Assembly (NCBI GenBank): GCA_025558095.1
Contig: JAIVFI010000019.1
Span: 372,001-436,000 of the forward strand
From: Hyaloraphidium curvatum SAG 235-1
Taxonomy: Eukaryota > Fungi > Monoblepharomycota
DNA: 64,000 bases
Direction: 5' to 3'
Shown here: piece by piece, positions 29,728 through 38,012 of the stretch
Layout: every line of letters begins with the position of its first letter
How positions within the stretch are numbered: position 1 is the first letter of the stretch
Program-made: the position numbers and the translations under genes
Notes under the pieces: model-generated
Databases searched by the model: none
Told to the model about the DNA's origin: nothing
Seen by the model: the letters and a program-made list of their open reading frames with translations, nothing else

Positions 29728-31644
29728 ATGGACTCGCGCGAGGACCTGAACGCGCGGATCACCGCGCAGGGCAACAAAGTCCGCCAGCTCAAGTCGCAAA
29801 AGGCGGAAAAGGCCGCGATCGACGCCGAGGTCGCCGCCCTGCTGGCCCTGAAGGCGGAGCTGCAGAAGCTGGACCTGGCGGCGAAGGCGCCGAACGGCGC
29901 CGCCAAGGAGGAGGACAACGATGAGGGCGGCTTCCAGCTCAAAACGCCGAAGGTGGCCATCGGTCTTGCAGTCTGCATGGGGACTGGATCCTGAGCTGCG
30001 TCCGGTTGCCAGGGGACCAAGGACTACCGCCCCGAGGAGATGGCCCTGCGCCAAAAGATCTTTGGCACCATCGTGAAGGTCTTCAAGCGCCACGGCGGCG
30101 TCACGATCGACACTCCCGTCTTTGAGCGGAGGGTGGGTGGACCGCCCTTCATGTCGGATCGGAGCTGATGGTCTTGGGGCAGGAAATCCTCGCGGGCAAG
30201 TACGGCGAGGACTCCAAGCTCATCTACGACCTCTCGGATCAGGGGGGCGAGCTCTGCTCGCTCCGCTACGACCTCACCGTGCCCTTTGCCCGCTTCCTCG
30301 CCATGAACCCGACCAGCTTCCAGAACATCCGCCGCTACCACATCGCAAAGGTGTACCGCCGGGACCAGCCCAGTGTGACCAAAGGCCGGATGAGGGAGTT
30401 TTTCCAGTGTGTCGGTATCTGTTGCCTTGGTATCCCGAGTGTCGCTCACTTTCTTCCCAGGACTTTGACATTGCCGGGAAGTACGACACGATGCTGCCGG
30501 ACTCTGAGGTCCTGACGATCGTGGTGGAGGCGCTGCGGGAGCTGGAGATTGGATCCTTCACCGTCAAGGTGAACCACCGCAAGATCCTCGACGGGATGTT
30601 CGAGGTGTGCGGCGTGCCGCCGGCAAAGTTCCGGACCATCAGCAGCGCAGTGGACAAACTCGACAAGGTGCGGCCATGCGGTCGCTGCCCTCGAGCGTCC
30701 CGCTCATTCGTTCATTGTCGCAGACGCCGTGGAACGAGGTGCGCAGGGAGATGACGGAGGAGAAGGGGCTTCCGGAGGACGTTGCGGACAAGATCGGCGT
30801 CTTTGTCCAGAAAAAGGGCGGGCCCGAACTCGTCCAGGAGCTCCTCGCCGACCCGCAGCTCAGCGCAAATGCGAGGGCAAGGGAGGGCATCGAGGAGATG
30901 GGTTTGCTGATGAAGTACCTTTCCATTTTCGGCGTGGTGGACCAAGTGGGTTCCGTTCGTGCAGCCCGCGTAACGGGGATTGATCGCTCCTTCCCTGTAA
31001 CGTGCGGCAGATATCCTTTGACCTTTCCCTGGCTCGCGGCCTCGATTACTACACCGGCCTCATCTTCGAGGCCATTTTCAACAACCCCCCGGCCGGAGCC
31101 GGCCACGACGAGGAAATCGTGGGCGTCGGATCGATTGCGGGAGGCGGCCGCTACGACGACCTCGTCGGCATGTTCTCGGGGGGCAAGAAGATCCCGTGCT
31201 GTGGGCTGTCGCTCGGCGTGGAGCGGATCTACTCCATCATGCTGCGCAAGGCGCAGCTGGACAAGATCAAGGCCAACGAGCTGCAGGTCCACGTGATCGG
31301 CGTCGGCGACGGCGTTTTGGAGGAGCGGATGAAGATATGCAGGGAGCTCTGGGACGCAGGGATCAACGTAAGTTTGGCCGGCCTTGCATCCGCAGAGCTC
31401 GCGCAAACTCTCTCCGCCCCAGGCCTCTTTCACTTACAAGGTAAAGCCGAAGCTCCAGGTGCAGTTTGACGCGTGCGACGACGAGCGGATTCCTCTGTCG
31501 GTGATTGTTGGGAAGAACGAGATCGAGAAGGGCGAGGTGAAGATCAAGGACATGACGGTGAAGGACCAAACGGGCTCGGGGGGCACGACGATACCCAGAT
31601 CGGACATGGTCAGCGAGATTCGGGCCCGTTTGGCTGCGAAATAG
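29728..31644 (+). CDS. HTS1: Histidyl-tRNA synthetase with N-terminal WHEP domain; multi-exon
   Basis: QGNKVRQLK (WHEP), [51 protein letters not shown]. Confidence 0.97.
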
Positions 31645-31760
31645 ACTAGAAGAGAGGAGGAGGGAGGACAAAGTGATCGGGGAGCCCCCGCGGGACCACG
31701 GCACCGACACCCCTTTCCTTCTCCCCCCCCCCTCCAGCAGCAATGCTTCGTGGTGGAGCC

Positions 31761-32435
31761 ATGGAACGGAAACAGAGCGACGTCAACGCGGAGCGCGCAG
31801 AGAAGGACGCGGACGCGAGCAGCGTTACTGGAAGTGCCCACGGAAGCACCACGTCCACTTCGGTTCTTCGCGGGATCATTTCCCAATGGGGAGCGACGGC
31901 CGGTGTCGGCGTCGGGGTAGCCGGGTCATCCAACGCCCAGCTCATGGCGCGGCAGGTCCAGCTTCTGAGCAAGGAGAACACCCGACTTCTCCAGGAAGCG
32001 AACGCTGCAAAGGAAGAGGCGGTGGCTCAGGAACGCCGCGCTCAGACCCTGGAAGTCGATTACGACACCATGAGAGAGACGCTGGAGGCCGTGGAGGCGG
32101 AGCGCAACGCCTTGCAGGCCGAGCGCGACGCGCTGCGGATGGAGATGGACGCGGCCGCAAGGCGACTCGCTCGCTTGCTCAGCTCGCATTCGGATCCCCA
32201 CCGAGCATACAGAGGACACGAATGGGAGCCGGATTTCGCGAGATCGTCGTGCAATCTTTGCGACGAAGACTGGACGCTCTCGAGGAGGCGGCACCACTGT
32301 CGGTCATGCTCCAAGCTGGTTTGCGCGTCCTGCAGCTCCGCTCGCATTGCAGTCGGGCTGTTGGACGGCAAGATCGGCGCTCCGGATGGTGTGGTTGCGA
32401 GGGTCTGCGATTCCTGTGCCGGGGCGTCGCCCTGA
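31761..32435 (+). CDS. Small coiled-coil protein with C-terminal FYVE zinc finger
   Basis: WEPD, CxxC, RRRHHCRSC and RVCDSC are the canonical PI3P-binding FYVE signatures. Confidence 0.85.
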   Translation: MERKQSDVNAERAEKDADASSVTGSAHGSTTSTSVLRGIISQWGATAGVGVGVAGSSNAQLMARQVQLLSKENTRLLQEANAAKEEAVAQERRAQTLEVDYDTMRETLEAVEAERNALQAERDALRMEMDAAARRLARLLSSHSDPHRAYRGHEWEPDFARSSCNLCDEDWTLSRRRHHCRSCSKLVCASCSSARIAVGLLDGKIGAPDGVVARVCDSCAGASP

Positions 32436-32459
32436 TTTTGCAAGAGGACATTGCTGAAA

Positions 32460-35400
32460 CTAGAGGAGACTGTAGTGTTCTGCGACGGCGGATTTCGCTT
32501 TGAAATAAGCCTTGCGCGCATCACTCGAGAGCATATCGACAGCCGGTCCGTCCGCGAGAAACTCCGCGAGGGTGTTCTGCGCGTCCGGAGCGATTTTGCC
32601 GTCAGGCGTGAAGATCGACTGGGGATCATTCCCGCGCGCCGCCATCCACAGCACAAAGCTATTCACGGCCCTGCCTCCGGAAAGGGATCCGTCGAGCGCG
32701 AAACCGCCCGATGCGACCCCGCGGTCGCGTTCGAGCCTGGCAGCGTCATGGGCTCGGGTCACGAGGTCTCCCACGCTTTCCCCCAGCTTCCTGCAATAGT
32801 CCCAGGTCGCCTCGTCGGTGGTGGCTTCGTCCAGCGCGGTCGCATCCAGCAAGAGGAACAGCGTCATTTGGAAGCGCTTCCTGTGCACGGCAAAGAACTC
32901 CTCGTAGTCCGCAGCTGAAGAGCAATCGTGGGCGAGGGGAGCGCATACGATGGCCGACAGGACGCGGCGCTGTTCCGCGAGGATCTGCGAGACCAATTCG
33001 GGCTGGCCCACGCGCTCAGTCACAATCAGCTGGAAGACTTGCAGCATCGCAAGCAAGAGGGGGAATCCGACTTGGATCATCTGCTTCTTCTCTTCGGAAA
33101 GCCCCTCCGCGGGGAATGCCTCCGCCGGCGAGGCCGACAGATCCGGCGGAAACAGCCAGTCCACATGGTAGTCCTGCGCGGGATGCTTGGCGCTGCCACG
33201 TCTCTGAGCTCGGACTTCGGTCACGTAGCTGTCGACGCTCGGGGGAACGAGGTCGTGCATGGCCGCGAGTCGAACCGAGATGTCCGCGATGCTCGCAGCG
33301 CGAGCGACGCGGGGTTGGGACAAAGCCCGCGGCCTCGACATGGAGTCGCCTTTCGGCCTTTCCCGCAGCCGGGGCTTGGAGCTGGCAAAAAGATGTGTGT
33401 CGACGAAGGCAAAGGTTTCGGCAGGAACGGCTGCCATCAGGCGACGTGCCAAGACGTTGATGACGATTGAAATGAGCTTCAGGCGGCGGATATCCACCCG
33501 GTTGTGGCGCGTGTAGTCCCCGGGGAGCTGCAACTTCGTGACGAGCTTCATCAGCTCCGACAGCCAGGCGTAGGTCCGCTGGCCAAAGAGCACCGAAGCC
33601 AGCGAGGTCCGCTCCGTGTTGGCCATGTACTCCAAGTAGTTCGGCGAGCTCGTCCAAGTGTCGAAGGCGATGTTGAACGTGACGCGGGTCTCGACCCCAG
33701 AAAGAGGATTCTCGTTTCCAGTTACTTCGTCCTCGTAGTAGAGCATCGAGGGCGGGAGGGCGGTAGATGGGCCGTCCACCGGGGAGCTGCGTTGCCGCAC
33801 GATGCCGAGGATCTCGTGTGCCCGCAGATACTGCTGGGCGGCGTCCACGGTCATGCGGTTGGTTTCGATCATGTAGGCCGTGACCTCCGCAACGGCGTGG
33901 GGCGGGGCGCCCGCGGCAATGGCAATGTTGCGCGAGTGCAGCGACAGGTGGCCCCTGGCAAAGCGCGCAAGTCAGCGCCGGCACTGTTCGCAGGGCGAGA
34001 GAAACTCGCCGTTGTATGCCCTCGGTGGTCAGAGCACGCAGGGCGGCAAAGTTCTGCGCCAGGCCGACGCAGACCAGTATGCGAGAGAGTTGCTTCGCGT
34101 CCGGATTGCCCGCGATGTGCAGGTTGTAGCCGTACGTGGGATGAGTCTTGAGCACGCCGCCCTTTGTCCCAACAGCCAGGGGCAGCTCAAGCTCTCCCAT
34201 GAAAACGTCCTCGCCAGCTTCGTTCTTCTCGATCCAGTACTTGGTGAGCGCCTGGTACCGGCCCGATCGGCAGGCATACGCATGAGATGCGGCCTCGATC
34301 GCCCTCCAATCCTGACCAAGGGCGATGCAAACCGAGTCGATGCCGTTCTGGCGGCCGACGGGAACGATCAGGTTTCTCACGAGGGTAACTAACCCGGACG
34401 AGACGCACCATGATGCCCTTGTTGTGCGTGGTGGCCCGGTAAATGTCGTCGTTTGCCCAGCTGTTGGCCTCGATGATCCGTTCCGCCACCTGCGCCCCTT
34501 CGAACGACTTGTATCGCAGTTGAGCGACGGGAATCGCGAATCGGGCGCGGGAAAGGCGGTCCGTGCACAGGTTGGATACGATCCGCAGCCCGATGCGGCA
34601 GCGGAGCATCTCCTGCAGGAGTGGCGAGGTGCCCTCGGCCACCGTGCTGGCACAGTTTGCTCCCATGGCATCGCACACGTCAATCGAGAGCTGGACGACG
34701 AGCCACTCCTTCGAAAACTCCGAGCCCTTCGGTGACGGCGTGGTCCGCGGCACCCTGCGCACCTCCATGCCCACCACGCCGCCTCCACGATTGACCATGC
34801 TCTGGCAGTACTGGTTGGCGAGGGCAATGATGTTGGTTCTCTCCGCGTTCAGCTGCAGCAGGAGACGTCTCCGTTAGCCAAACACCGTAGCCTCCACAGT
34901 CAGTCGCTGTTGGCCACCTTGGCGATCGCCCTCTCCATCTGGGAATCGGGAATGTCGTGCAGCTGAATCTGGGCAAAAATGACGTTGCGGTCGGGTCCCG
35001 TGGCCGTGAATCCGCGGGGCGTCCCAAAGGTCGACATGGTTTTAGCGGCGCCGGAGACGGCAGCGATGACCGAGGGCTCCTCAACGGCCATCGGGATCGC
35101 CAGGGAGCGCCCATTGATCGTGAAGTTCAACGCCAGGCCCAGTGGAAGGCCCATGCAGCCGTAAGCATTCTCGATCATGTTGTTGGCGATCTTGAGATGT
35201 CGTTCGTTCCGGCGGACGTCGTACGTCCGTCAACCCGGTGTCTCGACCACGGAACGTCGGAGCCCACCTCGGGATCCAAGCCGTCAATTGGAAACTCGTC
35301 CTCGTCGCCATGGAACACGCTCGAGTCCTCCGTTGCCGCGTCAATGTCCTCCAGGCCGGAGGTGCTGCCGTCTTCCGGTCGTTTCCGCGGGAAGAGGTCG

Positions 35401-35528
35401 GGATACACCAGGCGGATCTGCCGCCGCCTCTCGGGCAGCGTCTTGCGATAGAACCCGCTCCAGATGTCATGATGCGCCGCCGATGGCCGCGCCGACGCGG
35501 AGGCGACGCCCTTCGTTCCGTTTTCCAT
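32460..35528 (-). CDS. Class II (prokaryote-type, MvaA-like) HMG-CoA reductase fused to a ~450-aa C-terminal region; 4 introns
   Basis: [85 protein letters not shown]. No membrane or sterol-sensing domain. Confidence 0.92.
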
Positions 35529-35747
35529 GGCGGGGCCGCTGGTCCCGGGTGGCGTCCTCTTCCGGTCGGGTGTTTGCGTCTCCTACGACTACCGCACCGA
35601 AGAAACGCTCAATCGGATTTCGCGCTCGATGAGCGACTAGAGATATAGGACCGGACGCTGGCACCGCGGGAAATGGGGAAGATGTGAAGGATTTTGAACA
35701 AGCCCGAAATTGGGCTGGGCAGGTGTCGTCCCATTCTCCCTACCACG

Positions 35748-38012
35748 TCAGTACCCCCCGCGGCGATTCGGAGGATAAGGGGCGAACCGCTGTCAGGAAG
35801 CGTGAGACGACAATAAATGTCCAGTATCCAGTGCACCTGCCTGTGGCGGGAACCGGTCGTCGTGTCCCCTCATCGGCGGCATGTCCCTGAGAGGTCCATC
35901 CCGCGGATCCCGCATTGGCGGGCCGTCTCGATCCCGCGCGTACGGATGGTTCCTCGGCCCGCGATCATCTCCCCCTGGCGCATGCCTCGGACCGCGGCCC
36001 GGCCCGGATTGACGGCCATCGTACCGACCGTCGGGTCTGCCGCGGGGCGCCCTTCCGCCAGGTTTCTGGGACCCTGTGCAAAGATGATCGGGGTTGGAAC
36101 ACAAGAGCGAAGCTCCGCGATGCCCAACGCACCTCCGGCGGCATTGTACGCCTTGCGAGCTGTTCCAGACTCGAGCCCAAAGCTGTCAAAGGCCTCGATA
36201 AGCTGCTTGGCGACCTCGGGCGTGAGTTCCTGTTCGGTACACAGGATGCAGATAAGCAGCTGCCGCAGCTGGGAACCAAAGAACGGACCTGTCCATCGCG
36301 GCTGATCTTGACTGGCTTGTTCTCATTCCAGGCGTTCTTGAGGTCGGAGATCCTTTCGAACGGCAGGTCCTTCCTGATTCGGTGCCTCCCGGTGAGTTGA
36401 CCGGCGACTGCATCCCCCATCACACGCACTTCACGAGCCAGTTGACCTGGAAGTTGTCCCCCAAAACCTTGATCTTGTTCCACGGCACGTCAAAACCGGC
36501 TGCTCCTCCGACGTCCGTGCTCATCTCGCCGTATCCGTGGTAGTGCCGGCTTTCGTTGACGGAGAAAAACAAGACCACCCTCTCACAAGTCTAGGCGTCC
36601 AAGGTCAACACAAGAACGGAGACGGGCCACGCATGTCCGCGCACCTTGAAGGCCTGAGAAAGCGTTTCGGAATTCGACTTCTGGGTCGCCCACACGCCCT
36701 GCGTTGCCGCACATTGAGAATACGCTCCCGAGTAACCAAGCCCGCCGCAAAGCCACCTTCTCCTGGGAAATCTCGACGTTGTCGAAGTTGTTGCTCCGCA
36801 TGACAAAGTACCGGGCTGTCGGGTTCCTTGAGTCGTCGCCAAAAGCTCCGTCGCCAGGGTCCCGCCCACCATCTTTCTTCGGCGGCGGGGGATCAATCCT
36901 GCCGCTGGGGACCCGCTCATCCATCCGGGGGCGCTCTACGGAGCAAAACGAACGCAGCCTGGTGAGGTGCCGTCCCAGGGTGCCGTGTCCGTCCGACGTA
37001 CCCTCGACTCGTCTGGTCATGGGGACCTGGTAGCGGTCCTGCATCGGGCTCCGATCTCTCGACCTTCGGCGCACTTCGGCGGGCGGGCCGCCGCCGAACC
37101 GTCCGCGGTCTCGCTCCCGATCGCGGTCCCGGTCCCTTTCGCGCTCCCGATCCCGGGCCCGGTCTTCCCTCATCCGCGGCGCTTCGCCATCGACCGCACG
37201 CCTCGGCGGCATCCCGCCGCGAGCATCCTGCGGAGGCATCCAGTCGCGGCCCCCGGGGGCATCTTCGAACTGGTCCCGGAGCGGAGCCGGCTCCCTCGGG
37301 CGGAAACCGCCGTGCGCGGGTTCTGATCTATCTCGGTACTGCGGCTCGCGCGCCGCGTGAGCGTCGTCGTCGTATCGGCGGTGAGAGTCCTTTTGGGTAC
37401 AATGGAACGTGCACGCGGTCGGTGAACAGATCAGACGCAAACGGAAACCCAGGTCCTTTTACGATCCGGGGGCAGCAAGTCCATGCGCCACGAGCACCGC
37501 GTCCGGCAGCACGCCGGCAGCGGCGGCGCCGGTCGGAGCAGTCCGTGCGGGGTCGGCCACGTCGCCGAGTCGGGAGTATATACCTTTGATTGATCCATCC
37601 GTTCGGGCCGCGGCAGGGGCGCGGGCCCGCGATCGAACCCGCGGTCTGCGAAGCGCGGCTCCACCCTGGACGGCTCCGGCCGTTCCGATCGCTCCGATCG
37701 CTCCGTGCGAGCGGGCTCTGGGGGCGCCCAGTCCTGCGGGGGCGCGTCGTCTTGCCGGCGGCGGCGGGGCTCCGGGCGCGGGCGCGGCGGCGGCGGCGGC
37801 GGCGGCTCGGCGGCTTCCATTTCGGCGTCGTCGTCGCGGCGCGGCGAGATGGGCGACGGCGTCGCGCCCGAAATGCGGTCGAACTCGTCGTCGTCGAACG
37901 CGTCGGGCTCGGCGGGCGCCTCCGCGTCCGCCATGCTGCTGGCGTCCGCGTAGTCGGCGGCGCCCTCCTCACCTACTTCGAAGTCGACCTCGTCGTCCCG
38001 GTCGTCGGACAT
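35748..38012 (-). CDS. YTH-domain m6A reader, YTHDC1/CPSF30L-like; multi-exon, 3' end approximate
   Basis: RYFVMRSNN..NVEISQEKGVWATQ, VLFFSVNESRHYHGYGEM, VPW, LKNAWNENKPVKISRDGQE; RD/RE-rich N-terminus. Confidence 0.88.

Follow-up and report, generated by a model that had tools for sequence, protein, structure and literature searches.

What lies behind the flap domain of a fungal HMG-CoA reductase (HMGR)? HMGR is the classic point at which isoprenoid and sterol synthesis is controlled and, to our knowledge, all known regulation of the eukaryotic enzyme targets its membrane-anchored class I form. The question is raised by a 64,000-nt stretch of the genome of Hyaloraphidium curvatum SAG 235-1 (contig JAIVFI010000019.1, positions 372,001 to 436,000; this whole stretch is hereafter called the window), where a minus-strand gene at 35528-32460 encodes a soluble class II HMGR whose last exon runs on for 446 residues past the flap. 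A preliminary description of the locus, made from the letters of the DNA, had proposed that this extension is a dead prenyltransferase fold acting as a feedback sensor. The models and family comparisons presented here indicate that the extension very probably has the class I isoprenoid-synthase alpha fold and belongs to an old and undescribed family of fused proteins; a sensor function is advanced more tentatively.

One expressed gene encodes the reductase and the extension

Class II HMGR pieces are spread over three reading frames of the minus strand and are joined by four short introns, read from the DNA with fungal-type branch-point-like sites (three GT-AG and one GC-AG), into five exons of 261, 273, 444, 338 and 1492 nt (5' to 3') followed by TAG, which gives a coding sequence of 2808 nt or 936 codons (Table 1). 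The start (ATG at 35528) and the stop (32460) are those of the preliminary description, and the four peptides that it quoted are all present in the minus-strand frame ending at TAG 32460-32462. Its claim of a one-frame continuation beyond the flap holds for the 446 residues of the extension (window 33800-32463), which starts approximately 10-19 residues past the last flap helix, but the four introns in the HMGR part had been overlooked. The frame from the flap to 32463 is open and without a stop, and the ATG-to-stop open reading frame (ORF) within the window is 470 aa long.

A 9507-nt contig from a public run (X1, which is itself only presumed to be RNA) aligned to window positions 32300-35700 with zero mismatches, omitting precisely the four intron intervals listed in Table 1 (with 2 nt of slack in the joint at intron 4) and remaining colinear and unspliced through the last exon, as the preliminary description had expected of a single transcript. 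Because the four introns are removed at consensus boundaries, the contig is taken to originate from spliced RNA. It extends across neighbouring genes, adjacent transcripts overlapping or abutting at this locus. One expressed gene encodes a 936-residue soluble protein.

The reductase is a complete class II enzyme

Sequence searches with the window gene were made exon by exon, so that all scores given for it are per exon, and the structural model described below is of the extension alone. Exons 2-5 encode a complete class II HMGR, as had been read by eye from the DNA, including the flap domain and the full catalytic set of Glu, Lys, Asp and His. Exons 2, 3 and 4 matched Pfam HMG-CoA_red (PF00368), and the best NCBIfam model was TIGR00532 (class II, 'degradative'; 1.6e-16 for exon 2, 2.1e-19 for exon 3 and 4.3e-33 for exon 4), whereas the class I HMGR models matched exon 2 only, and weakly. 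The TIGR00532 bit scores of the separate exons sum to approximately 246 without the flap part, against a curated cut-off of 259.95 that is exceeded by the fused homologues P0010 (331.9 bits) and P0007 (262.6 bits). The best matches in the PDB were all class II enzymes, with Pseudomonas mevalonii 1QAX first for exons 3 and 4 and among the top three for the others; these alignments place the four catalytic residues at positions 83, 267, 283 and 381 (P. mevalonii numbering) and span the flap domain up to residue 422 of 428. No membrane, sterol-sensing or other Pfam domain was found in exon 1 by the Pfam search, and the WSGFY..TL.ER motif encoded there is common to the eukaryotic class II HMGR clade. 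Judged on these alignments, the first ~490 residues form a complete and apparently active class II (bacterial-type) HMGR.

The preliminary description had noted the absence of the sterol-regulated membrane domain from this gene, but its premise does not extend to the organism: a second HMGR, on contig C6 of the genome assembly (31.9 Mb, 55 contigs), is a canonical class I enzyme with a sterol-sensing domain, which makes the window gene an extra isozyme rather than the only HMGR. A third, intron-split HMGR-like gene (contig C28:25193-26302) carries a TEG.LVAS-type motif, reads GDAAGQN instead of DAMGxN, and is distinct from both the class I gene and the class II fusion.

Predicted fold of the extension

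The extension had no sequence match in Pfam (E <= 1), NCBIfam or the PDB in phmmer and profile searches; a single PDB sequence match at E 1.6 was dismissed as noise. Its AlphaFold2 model, based on an alignment of 46 family sequences, has a pLDDT (predicted local distance difference test) of 82.7 and a pTM (predicted template modelling score) of 0.82, with 301 residues at a pLDDT of at least 90, and consists of a three-stranded sheet (residues 18-58) followed by a helical bundle that is broken by a disordered insert (residues ~144-214). When this model was searched against the PDB with Foldseek, the matches listed (through rank 49) were all class I terpene synthases or trans-prenyltransferases (E 4.5e-3 to 5e-2; template modelling score, TM, 0.2-0.46). 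VIA-align, run against 48,161 representative chains, gave Z 12.4-15.2 with 229-275 residues aligned at a root-mean-square deviation of 3.4-4.8 A; the best 50 rows were again all terpene synthases or prenyltransferases, with the whole target domain covered, and 108 chains stood at Z >= 8 with just 21 more at Z 5-8. The ESM Atlas shape search returned terpene synthase (TM 0.51) and polyprenyl_synt (TM 0.48), the next matches lying below 0.26 by query; the ESM Atlas feature search was uninformative and gave generic helical-repeat clusters only, with scores of at most 0.86.

Since helical bundles can reach Z ~13-14 by their arrangement alone, a homologue from Gorgonomyces (P0029:422-790, 22% identical) was modelled as a repeat test. 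This second model (pLDDT 90.4, pTM 0.89) matched, among the Foldseek hits listed, only terpene synthases and prenyltransferases, and in VIA-align all 50 listed chains belonged to these two groups (Z 13.1-17.0). On the strength of the two models, it is very likely that the extension shares the alpha fold of class I isoprenoid synthases. It is not assignable to either the cyclase or the prenyltransferase branch because both score alike.

The preliminary description had anticipated a trans-prenyltransferase-type fold and the outcome of an AlphaFold and Foldseek check, and both expectations are supported. Its boundaries and its affinities need revision: the fold is formed by the whole 446-residue extension rather than by the last ~200 aa, and terpene cyclases are as close as farnesyl or geranylgeranyl diphosphate synthases. 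The helix-by-helix match that it drew can be followed by eye, colinearly, against a prenyltransferase of the same genome, but it has no statistical support. Hhalign of the family alignment against 80 cyanobacterial solanesyl-diphosphate synthases gave a probability of 0.2%, and in the best local stretch the KR...HD region was aligned to the other, first (GKRxRP...HDD) half of the synthases; nor was there a Pfam match, as PF00348, PF03936, PF19086 and PF00494 went undetected in all 46 family members (Pfam, E <= 10; scattered single matches only).

Conserved residues and the missing aspartate motifs

The residues kept in at least 60% of family members are mainly basic or amide: K75, W79, R98, N100, K106, K108, S111, N115 and R119 in the N-terminal lobe, and Q254, E276, Q277, H306, K308, R309, Q311, D319, H351, D352, R355, R358, D359, N380 and W385 in the C-terminal lobe, whose helices bear the motifs G.PLLLA..QVF, EQR, H.KR.Q.TLFLL.D, HD..R..RD and N.F..W. 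D352 is present in 44 of 45 members. The insert between the lobes differs greatly in length among homologues, whose matches break into two stretches there; that of H. curvatum contains two basophilic RxxS sites (RALS and RAAS), possible kinase targets, although the insert is conserved among homologues in neither length nor sequence.

The absence of DDxxD motifs noted in the preliminary description extends to the family. In a pattern search of the 46 aligned members no DDxxD, DDxxxxD, DxDD or NSE/DTE motif is conserved, and the window protein has none; sporadic patterns of the first Asp-rich motif in other members all fall in variable linkers, the NSE/DTE pattern was not found in any member, and no Asp-rich motif occurs anywhere on the long N-lobe helix that carries NVLARR. 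From its order in the chain, HDxxRxxRD may be equivalent to the second Asp-rich or NSE/DTE motif, His and Arg standing in for the metal ligands. Inspection by eye revealed neither a transmembrane segment nor a targeting signal, and the C-terminus is not a canonical type 1 peroxisomal targeting signal (PTS1).

Distribution and ancestry of the fusion

A HMMER scan of 1.84 billion representatives recovered 62 relatives of the extension, 35 of them at E <= 1e-10, and the extension is therefore more than a chance reading frame. The relatives usually matched as two blocks (residues ~10-160 and ~236-395) on either side of the variable insert. A HMGR domain lies N-terminal to the extension match in 16 of the 20 relatives scanned with Pfam, and the extension is fused to class II HMGR in every relative with sufficient N-terminal sequence. 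Apparent standalone copies were rejected: these 400-500-residue matches all start within the flap and represent 3'-exon fragments on short contigs.

A survey of the architecture, as had been recommended at the outset, found it in Chytridiomycota (Gonapodya, Boothiomyces, Fimicolochytrium, Polyrhizophydium, Gorgonomyces, Dinochytrium, Quaeritorhiza, Entophlyctis and a Chytridiales species), Blastocladiomycota (Allomyces, Sorochytrium and Paraphysoderma), Filasterea (Capsaspora) and Amoebozoa (Nolandella; P0043, 792 aa), where both domains are on one mRNA according to a Trinity transcript ORF. By this distribution across chytrids, blastoclads, Capsaspora and an amoebozoan, the fusion architecture is old.

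Tail-less Mucoromycota and bacterial relatives were found with the HMGR domain of a family member as query. The Mucoromycota proteins (Glomeromycotina, Mortierellomycotina and Jimgerdemannia) belong to the same eukaryotic class II HMGR clade and stop soon after the flap, and the bacterial proteins (44-48% identical to a family member) extend no more than a few residues past it. In a quick, unrooted maximum-likelihood tree, in which the bacterial labels on metagenomic rows are guesses and two rows so labelled (P0084 and P0100) are placed among eukaryotic sequences, 19 bacterial sequences formed one clade (SH-aLRT, the Shimodaira-Hasegawa-like approximate likelihood ratio test, 100), fused proteins occurred on all deep eukaryotic branches and the tail-less Mucoromycota formed one nested clade (SH-aLRT 89). 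Because fused proteins hold all of the deep eukaryotic branches and the tail-less Mucoromycota are nested among them, the simplest reading is that the ancestor of the eukaryotic class II HMGR clade already had the extension and that at least one loss followed; the Mucoromycota seem to be such a case.

Several individual records deserve mention. The class II HMGR models P0074 (Globomyces), P0082 (Catenaria) and P0086 (Sphaerothecum) end at or just after the flap amid fused relatives; that of Catenaria breaks off inside the flap helix, so some of these models may be truncated rather than true losses. A Schistocerca gregaria protein (P0047; XP_049849846.1, 877 aa, on a 426-kb contig) combines HMGR with the extension and groups with Nolandella (SH-aLRT 97); it may stem from a symbiont or contaminant contig, or from transfer. 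Other partners of class II HMGR were also encountered: P0150 (634 aa; NCBI record Nymphaea colorata), with an HMG-CoA synthase C-terminal domain (PF08540) N-terminal to the reductase, has a very long branch and may be a contaminant or a transfer in the plant assembly, and the bacterial proteins P0122 and P0165 (585 and 648 aa) carry a C-terminal GHMP-kinase (PF00288) part.

What the extension may do

Considered together, the predicted fold, the loss of motifs and the position of the extension suggest that it may be a ligand-binding pseudoenzyme that acts as a feedback sensor of HMGR, a role which we favour tentatively and would not call probable. As a non-catalytic pseudo-synthase, the extension would still bind a phosphorylated metabolite of the isoprenoid pathway, with isopentenyl diphosphate (IPP), dimethylallyl diphosphate (DMAPP), farnesyl diphosphate (FPP), geranylgeranyl diphosphate (GGPP) or mevalonate diphosphate as proposed ligands, and would do so through conserved Arg, Lys and His residues and not a metal cluster. 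The conserved polar residues are mainly basic (K75, R98, K106, K108, R119, K308, R309, R355 and R358, together with H306, H351 and D352). Because the extension is tethered to the mobile flap, where the catalytic His is located, binding would affect flap closure; this effect, or a change of oligomer state, would tune HMGR activity and yield a second, soluble, end-product-regulated isozyme beside the sterol-sensing class I enzyme. The tail would be dispensable for catalysis itself, as same-clade enzymes of Mucoromycota have none, and the fusions of class II HMGR to a GHMP kinase or an HMG-CoA synthase C-terminal domain support a partner that is functionally tied to the pathway. A fuller version is somewhat unlikely as a whole: that a pseudo-terpene-synthase domain gates the catalytic flap allosterically through metal-free binding of prenyl diphosphates, as an ancient feedback device of Amorphea that is distinct from sterol-sensing-domain control and was later lost in most fungi and in animals.

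A number of points weigh against the sensor and, in part, against the fold on which it is built. The Foldseek E-values are weak (~3e-3 to 5e-2) and the TM values over the fold searches are 0.25-0.5, helical bundles can attain Z ~13-14 through chance arrangement, and there is no sequence-profile link to any isoprenoid synthase family in Pfam or hhalign. The proposed ligand and regulation derive from fold, motif loss and position, and contact with the HMGR domain could explain the conserved residues equally well. Any assignment of residues to the two motif positions is tentative, as is the presence of a pocket. Furthermore, non-canonical terpene synthases without the textbook motifs exist, so that the lack of motifs is no proof of inactivity.

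A purely structural module that binds no small molecule, serving as a scaffold for di- or oligomerisation, a docking site for partner proteins or a targeting domain built on the isoprenoid-synthase fold, is possible, if somewhat unlikely. Obligate dimerisation is well established for prenyltransferases and many terpene synthases, and class II HMGRs are known to work as dimers or hexamers; the extension is dispensable in one fungal lineage; and the extra beta sheet and the disordered insert, which is variable and bears RxxS sites, resemble surfaces for interaction or regulation. However, polar and aromatic residues are conserved over many helices and across Amoebozoa and Opisthokonta, which exceeds the usual needs of a simple interface, and targeting finds no counterpart in the signals sought by eye or in the C-terminus.

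It is improbable that the extension is an active, non-canonical isoprenoid enzyme (a terpene synthase, a prenyltransferase or a phosphatase-like enzyme) and the protein bifunctional, although the fold is that of active synthases, a polar set (H351, D352, D359, D319, E276, K308 and R309) is very strongly conserved and class II HMGR is fused to true pathway enzymes in other organisms. An Asp-rich or NSE/DTE motif is conserved in 0 of 46 members, few acidic residues are conserved at all and the window protein replaces several of those common in the family (E344 to G, E346 to L and E257 to Q). The HMGR product is, moreover, several steps from any prenyl diphosphate, so a fusion would bring no gain in channelling, and Mucoromycota kept the HMGR and dropped the extension.

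An artefact (a mis-assembly, two genes read through as one, or an intron or stop that went unannotated before the tail) is scarcely credible, for even though contigs cannot reveal transcript ends and the 9.5-kb contig also covers neighbouring genes, the frame is open from flap to stop codon, the RNA-derived contig is colinear with the last exon and lacks four true introns, the same fusion recurs in ~20 named species (independent assemblies) and in one transcriptome ORF, and every fragmentary match begins within the flap.

Features of the locus and neighbouring genes

Table 1. Features of the class II HMGR fusion gene in the window (residue numbers of the extension count from its first residue; catalytic residues in P. 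mevalonii numbering).
Feature	Window positions	Strand	Remarks
Exon 1, 87 codons	35268..35528	-	Start ATG 35526-35528; soluble N-terminal region with WSGFY..TL.ER motif
Intron 1, 77 nt, GT-AG	35191..35267	-	Absent from RNA-derived contig; ends checked
Exon 2, 91 codons	34918..35190	-	Catalytic Glu in IENAYG (Glu83); Pfam PF00368 4.8e-21
Intron 2, 65 nt, GT-AG	34853..34917	-	CTAAC branch-point-like site; absent from RNA-derived contig
Exon 3, 148 codons	34409..34852	-	DAMGAN; catalytic Lys in THNKGIM (Lys267); Pfam 2.3e-23; 1QAX 4.9e-22
Intron 3, 61 nt, GT-AG	34348..34408	-	Absent from RNA-derived contig
Exon 4, 112 codons + 2 nt	34010..34347	-	Catalytic Asp in GQDWRAIEA (Asp283); Pfam 1.8e-29; 1QAX 2.2e-29
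Intron 4, 55 nt, non-canonical GC-AG (GCGAGT...CTGAC...CAG)	33955..34009	-	CTGAC branch-point-like site; confirmed by spliced contig
Exon 5 start, HMGR flap domain	33801..33954	-	Catalytic His in GHLSLHSRN (His381); aligned to class II residues 378-422
Extension, N-terminal lobe, residues 10-143	33372..33773	-	Predicted three-stranded beta sheet (PSM.Y.E and N.AF motifs) and helices; pLDDT mostly >83
NVLARR, residues 115-120	33441..33458	-	Conserved Asn and Arg on long N-lobe helix
Extension, variable low-confidence insert, residues 144-222	33135..33371	-	pLDDT <50 over 155-214
Extension, C-terminal lobe, residues 223-446	32463..33134	-	pLDDT 88-98
HRKRFQ, residues 306-311	32868..32885	-	Conserved basic patch; candidate phosphate-binding residues
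HDAARLERD, residues 351-359	32724..32750	-	Best conserved polar motif; end of long helix
Stop codon TAG	32460..32462	-	Ends last exon

The neighbours, at 30600-32435 on the plus strand and 36586-37440 on the minus strand, comprise histidyl-tRNA synthetase exons, a coiled-coil FYVE zinc-finger gene and an Arg/Asp-rich ORF that has no Pfam match. The FYVE gene is convergent with the HMGR gene and lies only ~25 nt from its stop codon. A biosynthetic gene cluster was considered and ruled out, as these neighbours are unrelated to isoprenoid metabolism.

Novelty and significance

Full-text searches of the literature turned up neither a class II HMGR with such a tail nor an account of class II HMGR in zoosporic fungi, and in the databases the family members are named 'hypothetical protein' or plain HMGR. 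The architecture and the extension family are accordingly regarded as undescribed, the component parts being of known kinds. Beside class I, a soluble HMGR lineage of bacterial type occurs widely among zoosporic fungi and in some protists, and on the simplest reading of the tree its ancestral eukaryotic form already carried the extension. Should the extension bind pathway products, it would represent feedback control of a new kind and a pseudoenzyme of a new class, and would offer metabolic engineering a ready-made ligand-responsive HMGR; even without product binding, it constitutes a domain family that lacks annotation, and its architecture is a marker for the early evolution of opisthokonts and amoebozoans.

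Comparison with known systems

The closest characterised relative of the reductase part, Pseudomonas mevalonii MvaA (1QAX; TIGR00532), shares its catalytic core, the four catalytic residues and the C-terminal flap, whereas the window gene is eukaryotic, has four introns and adds an N-terminal region of ~87 residues and a 446-residue domain after the flap. Class II HMGR is joined to another domain related to the isoprenoid pathway on one polypeptide in Enterococcus MvaE (thiolase-HMGR, PDB 7M1Z), and to pathway-related partners in P0122 and P0165 (HMGR-GHMP kinase) and P0150 (HMG-CoA synthase-HMGR). The partners in those fusions are recognisable active enzymes of adjacent steps, while that of the window gene belongs to no sequence family and is without catalytic motifs.

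In its predicted fold the extension resembles class I isoprenoid synthases such as drimenol synthase (7CJY), pimaradiene synthase (7E4O), GGPP synthase (3N3D) and solanesyl diphosphate synthase (9JQS), with 230-275 residues aligned at a root-mean-square deviation of 3.4-4.5 A and Z 12-17, so that nearly all of the catalytic domain is covered; it differs from them in its low identity (5-16%), in the lack of profile similarity and of DDxxD, DDxxxxD and NSE/DTE motifs, and in the addition of the N-terminal three-stranded sheet and the disordered insert. The small subunit of heteromeric geranyl diphosphate synthase provides a precedent for an isoprenoid-synthase fold that lacks the Asp-rich motifs and is a regulator and not a catalyst, the corresponding role of the extension being a proposal. 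Those small subunits are, however, clearly related in sequence to active prenyltransferases, and the partner that they regulate is itself a prenyltransferase, whereas the extension has no detectable sequence homology to such enzymes and is covalently fused to HMGR. Finally, like the sterol-sensing membrane domain of class I HMGR, the extension would be a non-catalytic attachment that couples the output of the reductase to end products of the pathway, although the two are unrelated in fold and differ in location (membrane versus soluble), in position (N- versus C-terminal) and in mechanism, which for the sterol-sensing domain is regulated degradation.

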